From Selaginella moellendorffii (lineage: Eukaryota > Plantae > Lycopodiophyta): DNA of 64,000 bases. Positions 16,101 to 28,811 of the stretch are shown here, one piece after another. Position 1 is the first letter of the stretch. The number at the start of each line of letters is the position of its first letter. The notes beneath the pieces were generated by a model. The model did no database searches. It had not been told where the DNA came from and worked only from the letters and a program-made list of their open reading frames with translations. The stretch is taken from contig NW_003314269.1 of the NCBI RefSeq assembly GCF_000143415.4, forward strand, positions 458,401 to 522,400. The letters run 5' to 3'. Position numbers and translations under genes: made by a program.

Positions 16101-18100
16101 TTCCTCTGATGATGATGGTGTGTGTGATAGATGACAGGCGATTGATTTGGGAGTCATCGACTCGCTCGGTGGCGAAGGCGAAGATGATCTCATTGCCGTG
16201 TTACACTGTTCCATGCCTGATGACCTCATCGCCCAAAAGCGGTGTTGGTTCTGTGATCTCGGGGAGAGATTCTTTAAAGGTTCAGAAAAGGTGGCGGGGC
16301 TAGAACATTAGGTTTCTTTTCCTGATCATGTGTGCTCACGGGATTGAGATCCGTACTGGGGAATACTGCCGTGTTGGGCTCTTACACAATTCTATACAAA
16401 AAAAAAATGAAGTTAAAAAACGGAAAACAAAAGGAAAAACAAACGGAAAAAAAAACAAGCAAGAAGTTTGACCCGCTCACGTTCAAAGTCTAGAAGGACA
16501 TGAGATGAGAGCAACAAACAGACGTGGGGCACAAGTCTTGGCCGCGATGACCTCCCCGTAATCAGTCCCGCGGAGGCGTTTTTTGTGTAGGTGGGGCTGA
16601 GTTGGGTTGTTGCATCTCCATCCCCTTGCCTCCCTACTCGCCCATCTTTCACGGATGGACAGGAGATCCAAAAGCCCCTTCCGTACATACTGTGACAACT
16701 TTGGCGGTGGATGCCGTGTTTTCATGGCAAACGCACACACACGAGCTCGCAAGTTGACAAGCAAACAGTATTTTTCTCTCTTTTTTTTTTTTTTCCTCTT
16801 TGCTGGATCGGTAGATATCTTGGGTGGGAACCCTTGCTCCAATCTAGAACCTCTAAGAGAAAGCATCTCTTGCTAGATTCCGTTACTCCAGGACCACCAC
16901 CCCGCTCTTTGTTATAAAGTGCGGGGTGTTTTAACGAAAGAAACTTCTCATTCCTGTGCGACTCTTTCTCGCCTTCTTCGGAGAAGCTCAGGGGAAGAGG
17001 TCCCAAAAGCGAGAGCTCTTCCAATGAAGAACCCCACAAAGGAGAGAGATATGGGCTCCACTCTAAGCTCTAAAGAATCACTCGCAATATGGCTGTACAA
17101 TACAAACAAACACTCGAAAAGAAAGGATTGAAAGCTACATATGAGAGAGAAAGAGAGAGACACTAGACTACCGCCCTCTCGTGGATTCCCTTGCGAAATC
17201 CAAATCTAAGCCACACAAAAATCTATAGCAAGCAAAGGGAAGTTCATTCCAAAGTTGTCTCGCGAGATCACACTTGTTTCATGAGCTTCCCCGCCCAGCT
17301 CCATCTTGTTGATGGTCACCGTCCACAATCATCACTCCAATCTTGTCACACGGCAAAAGGTTCCCATTATAAACCGTCTCCAAAAAACCATGAACTTCCG
17401 TACAATGCCGTATGACACGGCCCCTTCATATAAGTAACCCACCCCCATACGAAACCCACGCGGTGTTTACTTTTCTTCCGTGAATCTCTTCCATCGCCTC
17501 CATCGCCTCTTCTTCTTCATCATCCTCTCCTCATTCGACTCTCTCTCTCACATTTTTTTTTTACTTTTTTTCTTTTGCTTCCATGGTCTTGTAGACCGTG
17601 GTTTTTGGAATCGATCAGGAAGTTTGTTTGGCCACAGGTCTCCATCCCGGAGCGTATAAAACTCAAGTTGGAGATCCATACAGCACTGTCCAAATCCTGA
17701 ATGGGATTTCTGGTGACACGTACAGACGATCCTACTCGTCGTCGCTCCTTTGCTGCGGCTGCTGCTTCTTCTGTTTCATTCGAATTGCAATCGCGGGGAT
17801 TCGTCTCACAGGCTATAAAGGAGTTTGCTTCCTCCTCTTCTTTGAATTTTCTTTAGCTTCTTCTCTCTCTTTTTTCTTCTTCTTCTCGTGGAGGGGGCTG
17901 TGATTGTGAAGCGAGCGGGGAAGCAATTGGCCATTTAATGGGCATTCGAAAGACCCGGGCAAGGCATCACAGCTCTGGGACAGAGACACAGGAAAGAGAA
18001 GAGAGAGAGCGAGCGAGTTAGAAAAGAGCTTAAATGGAGAAATATCATCATAGCTGGGATGGAGCTTCTTCTTGATTATTAGCTCGTCAAAAAAAGAAAG

Positions 18101-18153
18101 GAGAGAGAGAGAGAGAGGGAGGAGAGAGAGGACTCAAGCAAGCAAGGAAGAAG

Positions 18154-18183
<30 letters not shown>
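18101..18183. repeat. (GA)n and (GAA)n microsatellites in the WRKY 5' region
   Basis: Read directly from the sequence. Confidence 0.9.
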
Positions 18184-18185
<2 letters not shown>

Positions 18186-18378
18186 GCAGATCTTTTCTTC
18201 AAATTCGGATATCTCTCGTGATCTAGAGTCGAAATTCTGGATTTTTCTGGGAAGGGGGAGCTGTGGCAGCTTCTCCAGACAGATGTTTCAGGAGTGCCAT
18301 GAGAAGAAGAGGAGCATACAACGGTGTGAAAATGTGGAGCAAGCTGGAACATCTTCCAAGTGACAAGAGAAAAGTCTT

Positions 18379-20461
18379 ATGGAGAGGAGGCTGATCAAGA
18401 GTGCCAAGGAGGAGGAGCAGCAGCAGCAAGAGGAGCTCGAGAGAATTCTCCAAACCCTAGGCGGAGCTACAGAAGCTTCTTCATCTCCATCGCGGTCTAC
18501 AGCAACAGCGCTGATAACTTCTTCTTTCTCTTCCAGTTCTTCCAGTTCTTCCAGTTCTCCCAGCTCTTCGTCGTCCTTGATCGCTAGCGGGATAGCTGCA
18601 TCGGCCGCGCAGTCAGCAGCGCTGATGGACTCCACGGTTGCAGCAGCGGCTCCCTGGAGCTTCCACTTGGATCCCGCGATGGCGGCCATGGTGGACTCGG
18701 CGCAGCTTCTCTACAGTGGCGGCATCTCGGGCATCATGGCCGGCAGCTCCACTGTTCCAGGCAGTAGCAGTAGTGGCGCTGCTGCCGCTGGGAGGCTCTA
18801 CACCGACTGGAATTTGGCCGACTTTGACAACGCTGCTACTGCTGCTGCTCCTCGATCCGGAGTGGAAGCGTCGTGGTGGCAGCAAACTTTCCTCTCGCAG
18901 CAGCAGCAGCAGCAACAACAGCAGCACCACCACCATCGCCACCAAGAACACTTGGAACAAAGCTACAATCCCGCGGGATTTTTCTTGGACGACCCAGATG
19001 ACGATCAAGTAGCGGCGCCGTCGAATCAACAGCAGCTGGATCTGGCGAGCGCTGGTCATGCTGCTGCTGCTGCTAGCGCTGGTGTTGCTGCTGCTGCTGC
19101 TAGTGGATCGATAGCGTCTGGAGGGTCAGGAGGAGGAGATCAGGCGATTGGAACTCCCACGTCCTTCACGTCCTCGTCGGGAGCCAGCGATGGCGACGAG
19201 GAGCACAAGGGAAATGTGGCATCGTCCGGAGGATCGCTCAAGCGCAAGGCCGGGTCTTCCGAGGACGCGGAGAAATCGTCGTCGCTGGAGCCGCAGCCGC
19301 AACAACAGGAAGGAAAGAAACCGTAAGAACTCTCGGCAAACTTTTCACCATTTCTTCTCTTCCACTGGGCTTTTGGTTTGTTCTTGCGGTTTCGTTGATT
19401 TCTTCCGTGCTTTCGTGCTTTCATGCTTCTTGGGCTTGCGAGGATTTGCATCGTTGTAACTGGGCTGCCATGAATTTCAGTGTTGGCGGACGCCATAGCC
19501 ATCCATCTCTTACGTATGCCCGCCTCGGGCATACGTGAGTCTACACTGGCATTTTTCAGGGAAGATTTTCGTGCTTCCAAAGGCAATGATGAAAACATGG
19601 AGTTGTTTTTGTCCTGGGCATTTGTGCATTTGGATTTCATCCCTGACTGGAACTCTCATCTCACAGATCTCTCACCAAATTTTCCTGTCAATCGTTTGCT
19701 TCCAGAGCCAAGCCTCCAAAGAAAGGTCCCAAGCGAAACCGCGAGCCTCGCTACGCTCTCCAGACGCGCAGCGACGTGGATATCATGGACGATGGATTTC
19801 GGTGGCGAAAATACGGGCAAAAGGCCGTCAAGAACAGCCCCCATCCAAGGTACGTGAGCAAAAAACTGGATTTTTCTTCCGATCGATCACCAAGTTTTCT
19901 TTCTTCTCTCGCAGGAGCTACTACCGCTGCACCAACAGCAAGTGTCCAGTGAAGAAGCGAGTGGAGCGTTCCTGCGAGGACCCCGGAATTGTTATCACCA
20001 CTTACGAAGGTACTCACACTCACCACAGTCCGGCGACGCTGAGGAGTTTGACGGAAGTTGGAGGCGGCGGAGGCGGAGGAGGTGCTGGAGCTGTGAATCC
20101 TTTCGGCAGCCAGCGCCCCGGATCGTTCACGCAGGCGCTGTACCAGACTATGCCTCACTTGCAAATGCAGCAGCAGCAGCAGCAGCAGCAATCGCTTCTC
20201 TCTGGCCTCGGAGCTAGAGGTGCCAGCTTCAATTTTCCATCGGCTCGAGCGCAAAGCCAGCAGCAGCAGCAGCAGCAGCAGCAATTCCTCCAGCAGCAAA
20301 GCCAGCTTCTCCAGCAGCAGCGGCAGCACCAGCGAAGCCAGCAGGATCAGCAACAGTTTCTACAGCAGCACCAACAGCAAAGCCGGCAAGTAGGCCAAAG
20401 CCAGACTTTCACGGACGAAGGCCTGCTAGAAGATATGGTTCCTCCTGGTATGCGGAAATGA
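18379..20461 (+). CDS. WRKY transcription factor, group IIc; exons ~18379-19322, 19706-19849, 19915-20461
   Basis: Spliced frame gives [37 protein letters not shown]|[36 protein letters not shown] (C-x4-C-x23-H-x-H). C-terminal [10 protein letters not shown]; poly-Q/S/A tracts. Confidence 0.93.
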
Positions 20462-21699
20462 AAATTGGAAACTTACCTCGATAGCAGGACCATCTCGAAG
20501 CAGCCAGGAGGTCGGTGTTTAAGTCTGGCCAAGCGAAGAAAGGTCCAGTTTTGCGCGTTCTACTGCAGCACCGAAAGGAGAAAAAGAAACGTACACATGA
20601 ATTAGCAAATAACTTCCACGGCCCAGCGCATTTTGAGACAAGGTACCTGGTTCTGGGCCGCTACTAACACCTTCAGATGGAGCTCTTGTCACAAGGCACC
20701 ATTTTTTTTTTGCTCGACGATCCAAGAGGCTTAAACATTTCCTCTCGCGCAGGCCTTTTCCGTTCCGATATAATTTGTTATATCAAGCCGCGGGGGGGAA
20801 GAGATGCTGCTTCGTAGTGTTACATTCATTCCATCTGTGTAGCTCGCAATAAAACTTTTGGTCACTTTCACCATATCTGAGCGTTGCAGCGGGGGGAGCA
20901 CAGAGCCGCAGTAGCGAAATCCCACCAGATGGATCATCCCATCTCGGGCAGCAGCAGCAGCAGGAGCAGCACTGAAATACCATAAAGCATGTCAATAGCA
21001 GAGCTCGGCGATGGCATTAATGCAACAACGTACCAGTTTGGACGAGGACTGATCGCGTCAAAAAGCCTGCAAAAACCACATATCTGGAACTCCAGAACCA
21101 AATGATCACTGGAAATGTGTGCATAGCTAGCTACCTGGGGGAGTACATTCTTGTGTAAGTGCGCTTACACACACCGACACAAAGCCTTCGCGTACGAACC
21201 AGCTTCAAACGCTTCAACCGTCGAGATCACCGGATCAAACCAGGACCACGCGGCTGGCCGCTGGAGCGATCATATAATAATACCCGGGTGGCTCGAATCG
21301 CGAGAGAGCGAGCGGAGACTCAGCAGTAGCAGTCGGATTGAAAAGTAGAGAAATCCATTAAAAAGGAAAGAGCGAGAGAGGGGAAGAGCCAATGTAGTAA
21401 ACCTCGCAGCGGATGTGTGTCGTGCTGGTGTGGCCACGCTCCATCTTCAGTGAGGGCTGACATAGTTCGCGAATCGATCTGGTCAAAAACGAGAACGATT
21501 CACCCGGTCAGATGGCACGAACAGGAAAATTCTTTCTTTTCTAGCAAGCAACACCTACCAGTCTACTGGTTGACAAGCCTTCGTCAAGAACGCAAGAAGC
21601 GACACTTAAGGTGGGCTAACATAGCTGACAATGCGTCCTGCTTTTGTTTACACCTCCAAGTTAGCCCCAGAAATCCAGCCAAACCAGATCTTACGCTCG

Positions 21700-22858
21700 T
21701 CAGTATGGCTGCCGGTGCTTCCTGTGGAAACGATGATACTGCTTCCGTTTCCTCTCGATCCCGCTTAGCTCCCGCTTCTCAATTTCCACCACCTTGATCG
21801 GGCTCAGCTTGAACGTCCCGTTTCTAAGCTTGGCTTGAGTGTTGTGGAACCAGTCCATATTCACGTTGTCCAGAGGAACTTTCGATGGATCGCCACCTGG
21901 ACCCGCCTTGACTCTCCTGTACGCCTCCAGTAGAACGTCTATGTCCGACACCACCTCCATCAAGCTCCGGTACCTCCCATCCGGATCCGGTGCTAGCATG
22001 GACAGCTTCTGATGAACTTTCTTGCAGTGCTCGTCCTGGACTAACGATCTAGAGTCGTACTCCTTCTTCATCGCTCTGAGATAAGCGCCGGCTTCCTTAC
22101 GAACCCGCCCAGCTTCCCCCTGCTGCTGCCTAAACTTCTCCTCGGCCTTCTTCACTGCGTCCTCCGGAACATTGGGAAGAACACGCGCGAGTTCTTCCAT
22201 CAATCTATCCGAGACCGAAGGCTGCTCCACCTCTTTACTTTCTTCCGTATCCTTCTCGCTCAGTTCACTGCTAGGTGTTTCATCCATCCCCTCGTTCTCG
22301 CCCCAGAGATCGTTGTCGTTGAGAAACGTATCACCCTCCTCAAACTCCGACCCCTGGTCTGAGTCGCCACCACCACCACCCTCTCCTTCGTCGTGGCTCC
22401 ACATCGACTCACTCTCACTATAGCTCCCTTCTCCATCGCTCATATCGGACAATTGCTCGCGCTCGTCGAAGAAGGACTTCTCATTCTTGTCACTAGAGCT
22501 AGACTCGGTGGAGCAGGACCTCCGAGCACCTGGAATGAGTAAGAACGGCTCTCAAACAACCGACTGGCAGGCAAGCATTCAAGCGGCGGAACGAGCGGAG
22601 AGAGCCTGACCTTCGAAACGTAGAAATCCGCCGCTCGAGAGCCCGGAAACCAGCCGCGATGACGCCAGAGTGCTGTGAAACGGCCGCATTGACTCCAGCG
22701 CCGCGATTTCACGAGGAATCCTATGTGTGTCGAAGTACGTGAGCAGGCAACGGCGCCGGGAGATCATACCTGAGGCATCGCGGCCGCTGGAAGGCCGATT
22801 GCCGCGGCGGCGCGCGCATTGTCGCGATCAGGCGCCTCGCTATTCCCCTGCTCGCCAT
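21700..22858 (-). CDS. Putative mitochondrion-targeted ~342-aa protein carrying only the RT0-RT1 N-terminal part of a group II intron maturase; exons 22858-22770, 22720-22611, 22529-21700
   Basis: Two GT-AG introns join in frame an Arg/Ser/Ala-rich presequence (MASRGIARRLIATMR...RPFHST...RRSCST), an acidic tract, and DGRYRSLMEVVSDIDVLLEAYRRVKAGPG...LDNVNMDWFHNTQAKLRNGTFKLSPIKVVEIEK. The latter resembles mitochondrial-lineage maturase N-termini. Confidence 0.72.
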
Positions 22859-22974
22859 GAGAAGCCCCAAGCCCTAAACCCTTGTGAGCTAATGACATGG
22901 CAAATCAGCCCTAAAATATGATGACGTGTCTGCCAAGCGGGCGGATAATGTTTTAGGGTTTTAGGCGCGAGGGA

Positions 22975-23142
22975 ATGGCTACAATATCCGGGAATGCGGC
23001 ATCCATGGCGCTCGCGCGCCGCCTTGTCTCTCCTCCCCAGGCGCTGCGTTCCTCCTCGTCGCTCTCCAAGTCAAATCTGGCTGCGAAATCATCGCCTTGC
23101 GTGATTCTCCGGGCAAATGCCGCTGCCGCCAATGCCGAAGGC
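22975..23142 (+). CDS. 5' end of a gene for a probably plastid-targeted protein; body lost in the assembly gap
   Basis: MATISGNAASMALARRLVSPPQALRSSSSLSKSNLAAKSSPCVILRANAAAA is Ser/Ala-rich with no acidic residues, like a transit peptide. Telo-boxes lie just upstream. Confidence 0.6.
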
Positions 23143-23242
23143 NNNNNNNNNNNNNNNNNNNNNNNNNNNNNNNNNNNNNNNNNNNNNNNNNNNNNNNNNN
23201 NNNNNNNNNNNNNNNNNNNNNNNNNNNNNNNNNNNNNNNNNN
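23143..23242. other. Assembly gap (100 N, probably a placeholder of unknown size)
   Basis: N run. Confidence 0.99.
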
Positions 23243-23815
23243 AGATTCCATGATTTGGAGAGCTAGGAATGGCAATGGCGCCGTGCTGCGAATGAGCACT
23301 CCCACAGTTTTATCGCTCCAAGGTATGCTGAGAAAATTCTCCATCTTACTTGTTCTTTCTTTCTCTCTCCTTTTCCTTCTTTCTTTTATTTTCTTGGCTT
23401 GTTTGCAGGCACTTTTATGTGCACGAGCACAACAGATGATGGTGGATAATTCTCTTTTGTGGTCCTCTCTAGCAGGTCACGTCGTGCATTCCTTCTTGAA
23501 GAGTGGAGTCACGTAATTTTCTGGTGAAAGAGAGAAAGAGAGAGGGAGAGATTCTCGCCAAAGAGGTTGGAAGTTCTTTTATTTTTTGGTTTATCATTGA
23601 GAAACGGAACACAAACTTTCCTTCTACGAACAGTCACTAGAAAGGCTATATATCTTTGATCTGCCTGATGTTTTCGCGCTTTTACAGGCACCTCCAGTAG
23701 CAGAGCTGAAAGCTATCGGTATAGATGTTGGACTTTGGGTTTCCTTGCAGTGATCTAAACTCCTGTTTTATTTTTTCTTGTGCTTTGACAGGAGAGTCGG
23801 ATGCGACCAAAGTTT

Positions 23816-25025
<1,210 letters not shown>

Positions 25026-25310
25026 CGCTCTTCCTCGCTCGGTGCTGTGACGACTCCCACTCCATCCATCACCACCATTTATACAGGTAACTTTGCTCCA
25101 ACTTGTTGAGTTGTGCTTGAGCTGTTTAGCAGAAATATCCTTTTCCAAATGATTTTGCGCGGCTTCTAGTGGAAGAGCAACTCCAGTAAAAAGTAAGCCC
25201 ACTTCCATTATTCTAGATTCTTGTCAGAATACATCGCTTGGCTCTAAAGCTACGAGAAAATCTTATGTACAGGTGACTGATCACTAGCAAAAAAAAAGAA
25301 GAAAAACGCT

Positions 25311-26755
25311 TCAATACGGCCGGTATGGATACTCTGCAAAGATTGAGTTAGCCCCTCTCACGCNNNNNNNNNNNNNNNNNNNNNNNNNNNNNNNNNNNNN
25401 NNNNNNNNNNNNNNNNNNNNNNNNNNNNNNNNNNNNNNNNNNNNNNNNNNNNNNNNNNNNNNNNNNNNNNNNNNNNNNNNNNNNNNNNNNNNNNNNNNNN
25501 NNNNNNNNNNNNNNNNNNNNNNNNNNNNNNNNNNNNNNNNNNNNNNNNNNNNNNNNNNNNNNNNNNNNNNNNNNNNNNNNNNNNNNNNNNNNNNNNNNNN
25601 NNNNNNNNNNNNNNNNNNNNNNNNNNNNNNNNNNNNNNNNNNNNNNNNNNNNNNNNNNNNNNNNNNNNNNNNNNNNNNNNNNNNNNNNNNNNNNNNNNNN
25701 NGTGGTGGAGCAGCGTACGGATAAGGCTGTGGAGCCGTGGAGTATAGCTGCGCTGCATATGGAGACGAGACCATCGGAGCTACTGGTTTTGGCTGGAAAG
25801 AAGATCCCAAGTAAGAAAAACAGTGTTGAAAGTATCAAGTCTAAAGCTTACCGTTTTCGTAAAGTGTAGAATGACCCGCAGTTCTCCGGCATATCTGCGA
25901 AAAGAAAGATCAAATGTAAGCTTTAGACTCTCCTGTTTCTTCTCGATTTTTGATACCTTCCACTCTTTGATGTCAGGTTCCACGTTGAATCATCATAGCC
26001 CGTGGTGAGAGCTTTGTCCAGCAGTATCCTAGAAAAAAATTTACGAGGGCCGCGTCAGGCATGACGTCCACGAGGAAACGCAAGCTACAAAAATCGCACA
26101 ACGCACCTTCCAGAGCCAATGAAGTCATCGAATGTAAGCGTGTTGCTGTTCCACACCTCCGCGTTTATCTCACGGAGCCCCTCGATGAGAGGCAGCACAA
26201 ACTTCTGGTTGAAGGACGGATTTCTTCCTCCATCTGCGGAAAAGAAAGTCTCTTAGCTCGTGATCAAGTAAAAAGCTAGCTACAGTGATCATGAGCTTAT
26301 GATCAAGAAAATGGAAGAAAACATTTTTCTAGCAAACAAGTGATCAAGCACAGCAAACCCAAAAAGAAAAAAAAAAGTGATCATGAGCGTATGATCGAAA
26401 TGACCGAAAAACTCAAGGAGCACAACAAACAAACAGGCAAACGAGAAATTTTCTTAGCTCGTGATCAAGCAAGCAGCTCCTTACCTGTGTCGGTCTTTGT
26501 CCTCAATTTGCTACTGGCATAAGTGATCACAACGTATGGATCCTGCCTCGACAGCCATTCCTTGTCTCTCAAATTCCTGCATCCTAGAACTGCCAAGACA
26601 CACAAAGAAGATTCTTAGCCGAATCACTCCAGGAAATTCGCTCCCACCAAAGAGAAATAGAAAATGGGAGCGACAGTGCCACCGACAGGGCGCCAAGATC
26701 TGGAATTCCACTCACCATTGATATCGAGGAGCTGCCCTTGCACGCCCGCCGCCAT
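25311..26755 (-). CDS. C2 (CaLB) domain protein with Pro/Tyr-rich C-terminus, interrupted by a gap
   Basis: Spliced MAAGVQGQLLDINVLGCRNLRDKEWLSRQDPYVV...DGGRNPSFNQKF...VWNSNTLTFDDFIGSG, followed by PQPYPYAAPP and ...YPYRPY*. Confidence 0.85.
25364..25701. other. Assembly gap
   Basis: N run. Confidence 0.99.
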
Positions 26756-26878
26756 TCCCTCTCGCGCTTCCTCGATCGATCGATCGATTGAATCACAGCC
26801 GCCCTAGTTTTTTCCCATTATATGTGAATGCCGCCGGACTGCGTCAATGCCGGCGAATATTCCACGCCATTCTATGTT

Positions 26879-28811
26879 TCACAGCTCCACGCGGAGGATA
26901 TTGTTTTGGTTCATGCTTTTCATCGATACTTCTCGCCTATGATCTATTTGCCATTCGCCATCTACGACGAACTTCATCTGGGCCAAAGAAGAAAGAAAAC
27001 GTTTTTTTTTAATCAGCCATGATCGATCGAAGAGAACTTTCGAAACTCGTTACCTCGTACACGCCAGGATAAAGCCATAGCTCGGTCTCCCACAACAACG
27101 GACCTCTAGAAAAAAAACCATGGAGTTTAGCAAAAGAGAAACAAGCCGACAGTGATGCATTCACCTTGATCCGTCTGGTTTGACGATCTCGGACGAAAGA
27201 TCGGGCTCCAGCACGAAAAAGTGCTGCCAGCCATTGAAGCTTCCGGCGAGCTCGACTTTGGAAGCTACACCCCACCACTCTATCTTCACCTGCGTTGACA
27301 ATCTTAAACGTGTCATGTCTGGAGAGAGTTTTCGNNNNNNNNNNNNNNNNNNNNNNNNNNNNNNNNNNNNNNNNNNNNNNNNNNNNNNNNNNNNNNNNNN
27401 NNNNNNNNNNNNNNNNNNNNNNNNNNNNNNNNNNNNNNNNNNNNNNNNNNNNNNNNNNNNNNNNNNNNNNNNNNNNNNNNNNNNNNNNNNNNNNNNNNNN
27501 NNNNNNNNNNNNNNNNNNNNNNNNNNNNNNNNNNNNNNNNNNNNNNNNNNNNNNNNNNNNNNNNNNNNNNNNNNNNNNNNNNNNNNNNNNNNNNNNNNNN
27601 NNNNNNNNNNNNNNNNNNNNNNNNNNNNNNNNNAGCTGCTTTCAGATCCTCTGAAAACACCGGAGCTTGGTCCTTCGACTGGGATTGAAGACCCTTGTCC
27701 TTCTGGATTCACGGAAGACAACGGTTTAAACTGAGTTTGTTTCTCCTGCACTTGAATATCATTTTCTTTTCCCTGTTCTCTACAAACAATGGCAGAGCAC
27801 CCCCATAAGACAGTCAATGCTGATGCAGAAGCTAAAGAAAGGTAGAAGTCCCACCTCTAAGAGATCTTGGACTTTATTGGTAGTAGCAAATAGTTTCTCG
27901 CTAGCTATTTGTTCGTCCTGAGAAACCGTCTCCCTGATGGAAACCAAGATGACAAAGATAAGAACAAAAAAAGCAAGCTCACCTGGAGCTGATGAAGGGT
28001 GTGAGCTTCGATCGTAGCAGCGCTGCTTTTCTCAGTGCAACCATTTCCAAGGCTTCGTCCTCGCTGTCAGATTCTTCAGTCGTGCTTAAAGCCTCGTTTT
28101 CTTCTCAAAATCGAACGAAAGAGTTTTTAGTGCTTCGAGGATTTAGAAGACGAATGTACCTTGATCCGAAGAGAACTCTCCCGTACGTAGGAACTTCTCA
28201 GCTTTTTCTTCCAAGACCTGGCTCGAATCTACTCCAAGAACATCTGGAGAAGGCGGCCTTATTACATCGAGATACTCAAGCTGGTGATGGCTGGCTCTCT
28301 CTTCATCTTCTGTCCTGGCAGAACCGTTAAGAACAACATCGTTCTCGACTTGCGGCTGTAGAGCATCACAACTTTCATCCACAATGTTTCCAACAACAGG
28401 CTGGCTCGAGACGGGAGTCGAAGCTAAGAGCTGTGCGATGGCTTTGTAGCCTCTGCGTCTCACAACGTTGGCAAGATCTTGGCTAGAGGAAGAACAAGGA
28501 AATCCATAAGAAAAATCTTTCGCTCAAAGCATACCGTCCATTGCTCGCTAGCTCCTTTGTACTTGGAACTTTATCAGAAGGAAGTCCATTAGCTACCATG
28601 AATTCCCGGAGCTCCCGCGCCAAATTCGCATCGTTCCACGGCTTACTCCTAAAAATCCTCTTCGATCAGAAGCACAGCTACAGTAACACACACCTGGAAT
28701 CCTGAATTGAGCTGGAGCAAAGAAATACCCTCAATTTCGTGAGCTCCCGGCCCGCATTCTTGCACCCCCTAAACTGGAGCTCCGCGGCGCCAGCGGATCC
28801 AGCAGCGCCAT
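26879..28811 (-). CDS. PTST3: PROTEIN TARGETING TO STARCH 3-like (coiled coil + CBM48), interrupted by a gap
   Basis: N-terminal LREFMVANGLPSDKVPSTKEL...DLANVVRRRGYK motif; C-terminal VELAGSFNGW...LWLYPGVYEIKFVVDGEW CBM48. Confidence 0.8.
27335..27633. other. Assembly gap
   Basis: N run. Confidence 0.99.

Follow-up and report, generated by a model that had tools for sequence, protein, structure and literature searches.

When a nuclear plant gene appears to encode only the first part of a group II intron maturase, it has to be asked whether the gene is real, from where its maturase-like end derives, and what a protein of this kind may do. These questions are raised by a locus of Selaginella moellendorffii, which was analyzed in a stretch of 64,000 nt (contig NW_003314269.1, forward-strand positions 458,401 to 522,400), hereafter called the window.

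Gene structure and transcripts

The minus-strand exons 22858-22770, 22720-22611 and 22529-21700 join in frame to a CDS of 1029 nt, which encodes 342 aa and is free of lesions (Table 1). The initial annotation, made from the letters alone, had proposed this three-exon model with introns of 49 and 81 nt bordered by GT-AG, and the model matches both the public annotation and spliced RNA contigs. The 342-aa product and the annotated S. moellendorffii protein LOC9642249 (P0001) share 98% identity and the same gene model. The gene of P0001 is located on a second scaffold, GL377565.1, whose copy was taken to be the other haplotype. Both scaffold copies are 1159 nt long and can be aligned without any indel, with 12 substitutions between them; six non-synonymous codon changes and six synonymous base changes were counted in the 1029 nt. 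This gives a rough dN/dS of ~0.3 between the scaffolds, with a lower value in the maturase-derived module, and the numbers are too small to count for much. Going by sequence comparison, the real evidence for constraint on the gene is its deep conservation (see below), not the dN/dS of the scaffold pair.

For evidence on the RNA level, contigs from four public runs of four studies, labelled only 'RNA?', were placed on positions 21300-23140. Since the introns are absent at the exact GT-AG borders, these contigs derive from spliced RNA. The gene is transcribed and spliced in the four studies, and the joints of both coding introns, for which RNA data had been proposed as a check, were found in contigs. 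One contig of 1016 nt (X1, X2, X10) spans all of exon 3. The SNPs of both scaffolds are present in the contigs, in different runs.

Two features of the transcripts had been missed. The main mRNA does not end near the stop codon; it loses an 80-nt intron 141 nt after the TGA and continues into a fourth exon from 21478. Furthermore, in a second isoform the end of exon 2 (22611) is joined straight to exon 4 (21478), omitting 1132 nt including exon 3. This joint is present as a contig in X10 and as a loose end in X1, X2 and X12, and the isoform is abundant, with contig depths of ~0.6 of the main form. Its predicted product has 76 aa, consisting of 66 shared residues and DRFANYVSPH (10 codons of exon 4), followed by a stop. 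The 3' UTR intron, the fourth exon and the exon-3-skipping isoform are new for this locus.

Exon 2 contains ESMRPFHSTLASSRLVSGLS, which may be an NFD6/NOXY2-like core; we presume such a core to follow the pattern E..ES.xP.HS..AS.RL.S.LS and to occur in proteins of about 80-100 aa. Neither Pfam with aa 1-80 nor a search of the ESM Atlas with aa 1-70 gave a match. Exons 1-2, the 'presequence' of the main product, may correspond to the opening two exons of a gene for an NFD6-like small protein.

Table 1. Coordinates of the gene features in the window (position 1 is the first letter of the window)
Feature	Positions	Strand	Remarks
Exon 1 (ATG 22858-22856)	22770..22858	-	aa 1-30; intron 1 joint in RNA contig of run X2
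Intron 1	22721..22769	-	49 nt, GT-AG, phase 2; contig joint 22719/22769
Exon 2	22611..22720	-	aa 31-67; contains ESMRPFHSTLASSRLVSGLS
Intron 2	22530..22610	-	81 nt, GT-AG, phase 1; joint in run X12, matching loose ends in X1, X2, X10
Exon 3, first part: acidic Ser/Asp/Glu-rich tract	22060..22527	-	aa 68-223
Helical linker ahead of RT0 module	21982..22059	-	aa 224-249; family alignments
Maturase-derived module	21775..21981	-	aa 250-318; phmmer, hhalign, tblastn, alignment
Basic C-terminal tail	21703..21774	-	aa 319-342; in place of remaining RT1 and all beyond
TGA stop codon	21700..21702	-	last exon-exon junction 141 nt downstream
3' UTR portion inside exon 3	21559..21699	-	1016-nt RNA contigs run from 22531 to 21559, then jump to 21478
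Intron 3, within 3' UTR	21479..21558	-	80 nt, GT-AG; joint 21478/21559 in X1, X2, X10
Exon 4	21300..21478	-	3' UTR of main mRNA; RNA contigs extend below 21300

Maturase homology of the C-terminal module

The first 30 aa of the protein are Arg-rich with 8 net positive charges and contain zero acidic residues, which gives this segment a presequence-like look. A mitochondrial location of the protein is predicted as probable. The following part (aa 31-223) has a net charge of -23; its acidic tract contains the Trp-acidic motifs SMWSHDE and DLWGENE, and only weak Pfam matches, all below the cut-off, were obtained for it. The helical linker includes the L..L...PDG lead-in, which is conserved in the family described below, and corresponds to a helix at residues 5-16 of an AF2 model. 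The module itself, near neutral in Selaginella, consists of NTE helix 1 (DGRY..LMEVVSDIDVLLEAYRRVKAG), the RT0 loop, helix 2 (MDWFHNTQAKLRNGTF) and the first RT1 strand, in which KVVEIEK is the equivalent of the maturase RRVxIPK. The last 22 aa have a net charge of +7.

According to phmmer, hhalign and tblastn, aa 250-318 share homology with mitochondrial-type group II maturases, namely with their N-terminal extension/RT0 and first RT1 strand. Using phmmer, the last 160 aa were compared with 1.84e9 proteins, which yielded 46 matches at E ≤ 1e-3. Full-length maturases were matched with E-values of 2.7e-9, 2.1e-7 and 2.3e-7. Full-length matches comprise 700-960 aa and carry RVT_1, Intron_maturas2 and often an AI2M-type HNH. 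In the three maturases scanned with Pfam, the match stops where RVT_1 starts; for P0004 (RVT_1, Intron_maturas2 and HNH; E 2.7e-9), the match covers 74-149 and RVT_1 begins at 146. The nearest full-length relatives (P0004, P0005, P0006 and P0009) are annotated only as 'group II intron reverse transcriptase/maturase', and no recognisable nMAT was among the 46 significant matches.

An hhalign comparison of 19 short-family modules with 19 maturase N-termini gave a probability of 99.6% and an E-value of 2.7e-24. With the family profile, the top match among 177,635 PDB sequences was LtrA, residues 27-97 (E 0.029); phmmer of exon 3 against PDB sequences returned noise only. When seven maturases were searched against the 64-kb window by tblastn, the sole match was 21981-21730 (E 2e-14 to 5e-9). 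Module and maturases can be aligned column by column over the DG(R/K)Y lead-in, helix 1, the RT0 loop, helix 2 and the RRVxIPK strand. Thus, the resemblance to RT0-RT1 noticed in the initial annotation was borne out by the phmmer and hhalign values and by LtrA as top PDB match.

Of the profile and fold searches of the C-terminus that had been suggested, the profile part succeeded (hhalign, LtrA), whereas the fold part did not. An AF2 model of the last 114 aa, built from a 19-sequence alignment, has moderate confidence (pLDDT 74, pTM 0.40). Foldseek with this model gave nothing at E ≤ 0.001 in the PDB and hence no group II RT, and a wide search with VIA-align returned generic helical matches only (Z ≤ 6.3), again without a group II RT; the fragment is too small and non-globular for fold searches.

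The remaining parts of a maturase were searched for in the protein and in the window. Pfam assigned no domain to the 342-aa protein, to its C-terminus or to other family members; RVT_1 is absent from the protein and RT1-RT7/YADD were not encountered. Domain X/thumb (Intron_maturas2, GIIM) is absent according to Pfam on the protein and tblastn across the 64 kb. Past the IPK-equivalent position, tblastn with seven full-length maturases detected no RT2-7, YADD, X or En anywhere in the window; initially, RT2-7, YADD and X had been noted as missing downstream of the module. Rfam at E ≤ 1 reported no group II intron element in 17000-27000, only sub-threshold noise. The gene is nuclear, is interrupted by three GT-AG introns and is not encoded within domain IV of a group II intron. 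Judged by its domain content, the protein is a maturase fragment and not a maturase. The earlier term 'non-catalytic' is appropriate, as every catalytic and thumb element is missing, and the earlier view of a mitochondrial-lineage maturase fragment in an intact, expressed nuclear gene agrees with the homology, the spliceosomal introns and the RNA.

Family, age and relation to DFR1

Short proteins with the same end point are encoded by the second-scaffold copy and by a Selaginella paralogue, and they recur in Diphasiastrum, ferns and all angiosperms sampled. The second Selaginella gene (P0003) encodes 355 aa with the same truncated architecture, and the Diphasiastrum protein (P0002, 273 aa) is 54% identical over the module. 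Lycophyte orthologues sharing the truncation, for which a search had been proposed, therefore exist, and the second scaffold and the relatives end at the same point instead of continuing into a full-length maturase, the case named at the outset as speaking against a domesticated fragment. Fern members include Adiantum and Ceratopteris. Angiosperm members were found by phmmer at E of about 1e-5 in the 1.84e9 proteins; at least 120 listed members are 60-79% identical among each other and are mostly named 'uncharacterized'. A profile search with the full-length family alignment added only further ferns among the matches listed. Bryophyte, charophyte or gymnosperm members were not among the matches listed, and this search was too limited to show absence.

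The common layout comprises a basic N-terminus, an acidic tract with Trp-acidic motifs, the RT0 module and a Lys/Arg tail of +4 to +10. A basic C-terminal tail occurs in every family member examined, and five of the eight tabulated members have an Arg/Ser-rich N-terminus without an acidic residue in the first 30 aa. Conservation centers on the two RT0 helices, and G23, E30, D36, L38, P49, F66 and R74 of the aligned segment are invariant. It is lowest in the RT0 loop, whose place is taken by PEYEELRKGGPK in angiosperms and which has gained an acidic insertion in ferns.

A maximum-likelihood tree separates the short family from the sampled maturases by a branch with a support of 98/94, a split which may be somewhat inflated by the differing flanks of the two groups. 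Within the short family, the order is (Diphasiastrum,(Selaginella, Selaginella)) and (ferns, angiosperms). This order follows plant phylogeny, which suggests vertical descent and a Selaginella-specific duplication. Angiosperm members are strongly diverged in the module, with a tree branch of 1.43 changes per column. For gene structure, this gene (by its second-scaffold copy, L003), the paralogue (L004) and the Arabidopsis gene (L001) were compared. In each of them, two short 5' coding exons precede a single large one, and the intron phases are 2 and then 1. Because end point, layout, gene structure and tree agree in this way, the truncation predates the lycophyte-euphyllophyte split. From these comparisons, the ancestor shared by lycophytes, ferns and seed plants is judged to have had both the cut after the IPK-equivalent and the Lys/Arg tail already in place.

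The possibility that the gene is a recent truncation, a pseudogene, an assembly artefact or a chance resemblance is practically negligible. A 100-N gap, which lies 285 nt upstream of the ATG, is the one point in its favor. These possibilities were rejected in view of the 1159-nt copy on the second scaffold, with its 12 substitutions and no indel, of transcription and splicing in four studies, of an end point kept from lycophytes to angiosperms, and of E-values down to 2.7e-24.

The Arabidopsis member, P0166, has 309 aa and is encoded on Chr5 at ~5.757 Mb. It is flanked in one direction by HMA and LUC7 genes, and in the other by two EF-hand genes together with a DELLA/GRAS gene. We take its position to be that of At5g17460, assuming that these neighbors include LUC7B (At5g17440) and RGL3 (At5g17490). 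Pairwise BLASTP of the Selaginella protein to P0166 gave an E-value of 7e-13. The two share the PDGRY-led C-terminal module (BLASTP, phmmer and one clade), the charge layout and the gene structure. By these marks, the gene is a lycophyte member of the DFR1 family and is neither an orphan nor lineage-specific. It is very probable that both the membership in the DFR1 family and the origin of the module from maturase RT0/early RT1 are correctly assigned.

At5g17460 is named DFR1 and listed as mitochondria-associated in published papers. According to PMC10837010, a study of 2018 (Ren et al. 2018, Cell Rep 23:3960) presented DFR1 as a mitochondrial protein which regulates proline catabolism, and it reported binding of DFR1 to ProDH and P5CDH. 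The term 'undescribed system', used for the locus at first, is thus not tenable. In the literature searched, no publication was found that ties DFR1 or At5g17460 to maturases, and the portion of a 2023 plant maturase survey that could be consulted does not mention RT0-only proteins.

Possible roles of the protein

Our main reading, to which we assign a probability of roughly 0.6, is that this expressed nuclear gene encodes a DFR1-family protein of 342 aa which is non-catalytic and probably mitochondrial, and which most likely modulates partners. Having no polymerase or thumb, the protein can act only by binding. The helical pair derived from RT0 and the basic tail would form a docking module, and the long acidic, Trp-containing tract would serve as a regulatory or chaperone-like arm. 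As an orthologue of Arabidopsis DFR1, the protein would bind and modulate partner proteins in the matrix, those reported being ProDH and P5CDH. In genuine maturases, the RT0 loop is the element which contacts RNA. A docking or regulatory role in the matrix is favored here because the loop has been rewritten and because DFR1 provides the sole experimental data for the family; a role in RNA binding is still alive because of the basic tail and the maturase ancestry. That the protein is a protein-binding regulator rather than an RNA cofactor is proposed only tentatively.

Several points stand against this reading. The result on DFR1, ProDH and P5CDH has itself been called into question: no DFR1 was seen in ProDH1/P5CDH complexes, and the assays drew criticism for their methods (PMC10837010). 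DFR1 is described as 'of otherwise unknown function' and its biochemical role is disputed. RT0 originally served to contact RNA, and a basic tail, present throughout the family, would suit RNA binding equally. In addition, the AF2 model is of moderate quality and no group II RT was recovered by the structure searches.

Retention as a splicing cofactor, as favored in the initial annotation, is the strongest alternative to partner modulation and still unlikely. The RT0 module and the basic tail would bind mitochondrial group II intron RNA, e.g., domain IV, without RT and thumb. The basic residues of RT0 which contact D4 are thought to confer intron specificity (PMC9321910), the tail is strongly basic in all members, and since matR is missing from Selaginella mitochondria, their 35 group II introns need trans-acting factors. 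However, it is the RT0 loop that varies most, to the point of an acidic insertion in ferns, and the near-neutral charge of the Selaginella module does not suit RNA binding either. The thumb (domain X), which reviews tie to splicing, is missing. At5g17460 also appears in lists of cold- and ABA-response genes and is strongly responsive. To our knowledge, no housekeeping splicing factor shows such a cold- and ABA-responsive pattern.

A split maturase, in which the nuclear protein would supply RT0 in trans to MatR or another partial maturase (e.g., X-only), is very improbable. The short family retains exactly the RT0 region and is predicted for the same organelle, which fits such a partnership, as matR and matK are without the N-terminal RT0 region and the RT0s of nMATs are degenerate (PMC9321910). 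In S. moellendorffii mtDNA, however, nad1i728g2 has no matR and nad4L sits there (PMC5654404), and two expressed copies of the short gene are retained nonetheless. The divergence of the angiosperm module (1.43 changes per column) is unexpected for a conserved interface. About 20 RT1 residues are apparently in neither half, if MatR starts where we assume it does. Moreover, the maturase P0045, which was assigned to the cox1i44 type from its N-terminus, is a weaker match than others, and the cox1i44-type lineage is the one reported to be closest to matR.

We give little credence to a wider proposal, in which the DFR1 family would be the missing front end of plant maturases: on group II intron RNPs, the imported RT0 module would be the trans-acting partner of MatR, which is RT0-less, of the RT0-degenerate nMATs or of an X-only protein, and the stress and proline phenotypes of DFR1 would lie downstream of altered splicing. 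At the Selaginella locus, the module would be spliced alternatively from an NFD6-like gene, one promoter and one presequence serving two mitochondrial proteins.

An acidic-basic protein of the nucleus or nucleolus, with the Lys/Arg tail as NLS and a histone- or nucleolin-like acidic tract, is scarcely credible, although the composition fits and some automatic annotations of family members read 'nucleolin' or 'acidic nuclear phosphoprotein 32'. The Arg/Ser-rich, acid-free N-terminus of five in eight tabulated members and the mitochondrial listing of DFR1 in papers speak against it.

The known system nearest to the Selaginella gene is Arabidopsis DFR1, with which it has in common the presequence, the acidic Trp tract, the PDGRY-led module, the basic tail and three coding exons with the same phases. 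Unlike in Arabidopsis, the Selaginella locus has an extra 3' exon and an exon-skipping isoform; module identity is only about 33%, and the 5' exons differ. The RT0 loop is maturase-like in Selaginella (PGGDPSKVPLDNV), whereas it has been rewritten in angiosperms. DFR1 has been studied experimentally; the Selaginella protein is described here from sequence and transcripts. With mitochondrial-lineage maturases, for which LtrA is the solved model, the protein shares the N-terminal extension with DG(R/K)Y, the RT0 loop and the first RT1 strand. In contrast to them, it lacks RPLGI, RT2-7, YADD, domain X and En, and its gene is nuclear, has spliceosomal introns and has no group II RNA nearby in Rfam. 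nMAT1-4 and the Selaginella nMATs are nuclear, stem from mitochondrial maturases and have mitochondrial targeting (Guo and Mower 2013, as cited in PMC3927076). Like them, the Selaginella gene is a nuclear gene derived from a mitochondrial maturase, but nMATs retain RT and domain X, whereas the Selaginella protein has RT0 only. MatR and MatK are likewise degenerate, non-mobile maturase derivatives; their content is complementary, i.e., domain X without RT0 (PMC9321910) as opposed to RT0 alone.

For the splicing of their degenerate group II introns, plant mitochondria need numerous factors that act in trans. The maturase descendants known so far (MatR, MatK and nMAT1-4) all retain the thumb, while their RT0 is lost or degraded. 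In the DFR1 family the reverse has survived, namely RT0 by itself; it has been kept from the last shared ancestor of lycophytes, ferns and seed plants onwards, and the family is present in every angiosperm sampled. An RT0-only protein is a new architecture among domesticated retroelement parts and maturase derivatives, and the Selaginella locus adds the exon-level reuse of one 5' module for two products. For research on DFR1, maturase ancestry offers a testable alternative, namely binding of RNA or of maturases. The relevance of the finding lies mainly in plant mitochondrial biology, where it gives the enigmatic DFR1 a testable molecular identity.

Transcript forms and the 3' UTR intron

The 3' UTR of the DFR1-family gene is interrupted by a spliceosomal intron. 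In plants, an intron placed there downstream of the stop codon can subject the mRNA to nonsense-mediated decay; this position notwithstanding, the mRNA assembled readily in all of the four public RNA runs. RNA contigs from these runs also gave a second form, in which exon 2 is joined directly to exon 4 (21478-22611, minus strand), whereby the entire maturase-like exon is bypassed. One run yielded a contig across this joint, three further runs from separate studies had loose ends at it, and the contig depth of the exon-skipping form was ~0.6 of that of the main form. The predicted product of the skipped mRNA would be 76 AA long.

Features of the neighbourhood of the DFR1-family gene and its paralogue locus
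Feature	Position	Strand	Remark
WRKY gene	19535-21480	+	convergent with the DFR1-family gene
3' UTR spliceosomal intron	21479-21558	-	80 nt; 141 nt past the stop codon
Class III peroxidase ORF fragments	23816-24736	-	upstream of the DFR1-family gene
N run	23143-23242		100 nt; 285 nt upstream of the ATG, clear of the gene
N run	25364-25701		338 nt
N run	27335-27633		299 nt
Paralogue P0003 (LOC112343584)	L004:5001-6182		flanked by an LHC gene on one side and a tubulin gene on the other

Flanking genes

The last-exon ORF of the WRKY gene (19535-20461) encodes the zinc-finger half (YYRCT...C.VKK.VER...TTYEG.H.H) and a long poly-Gln tail. The 3' ends of the two genes may overlap, since a 1662-nt RNA contig of run X12 begins in exon 4 of the DFR1-family gene and, if colinear, would reach ~19833. 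On the second scaffold, which carries another copy of the DFR1-family gene, the position syntenic to the peroxidase fragments is occupied by a PF00141 gene (L003:3860-5116).

Full-length and short relatives

Among the nearest full-length maturases is P0005 (962 AA, from a Logan contig), which is GC-rich and Arg/Ala/Pro-rich and shares one continuous reading frame with the C-terminal portion of ATP synthase alpha (atp1). This fusion presumably represents a maturase encoded by an atp1 intron in a mitochondrial genome of high GC content. In the Selaginella paralogue P0003, an ordinary short presequence replaces the putative NFD6-like exons of the DFR1-family gene, whereas the intron phases are identical. 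In the fern Adiantum nelumboides, a single 2.48-Mb contig holds multiple, nearly identical short genes of the family (P0024 and P0181-P0184); their almost consecutive accession numbers point to a tandem arrangement.
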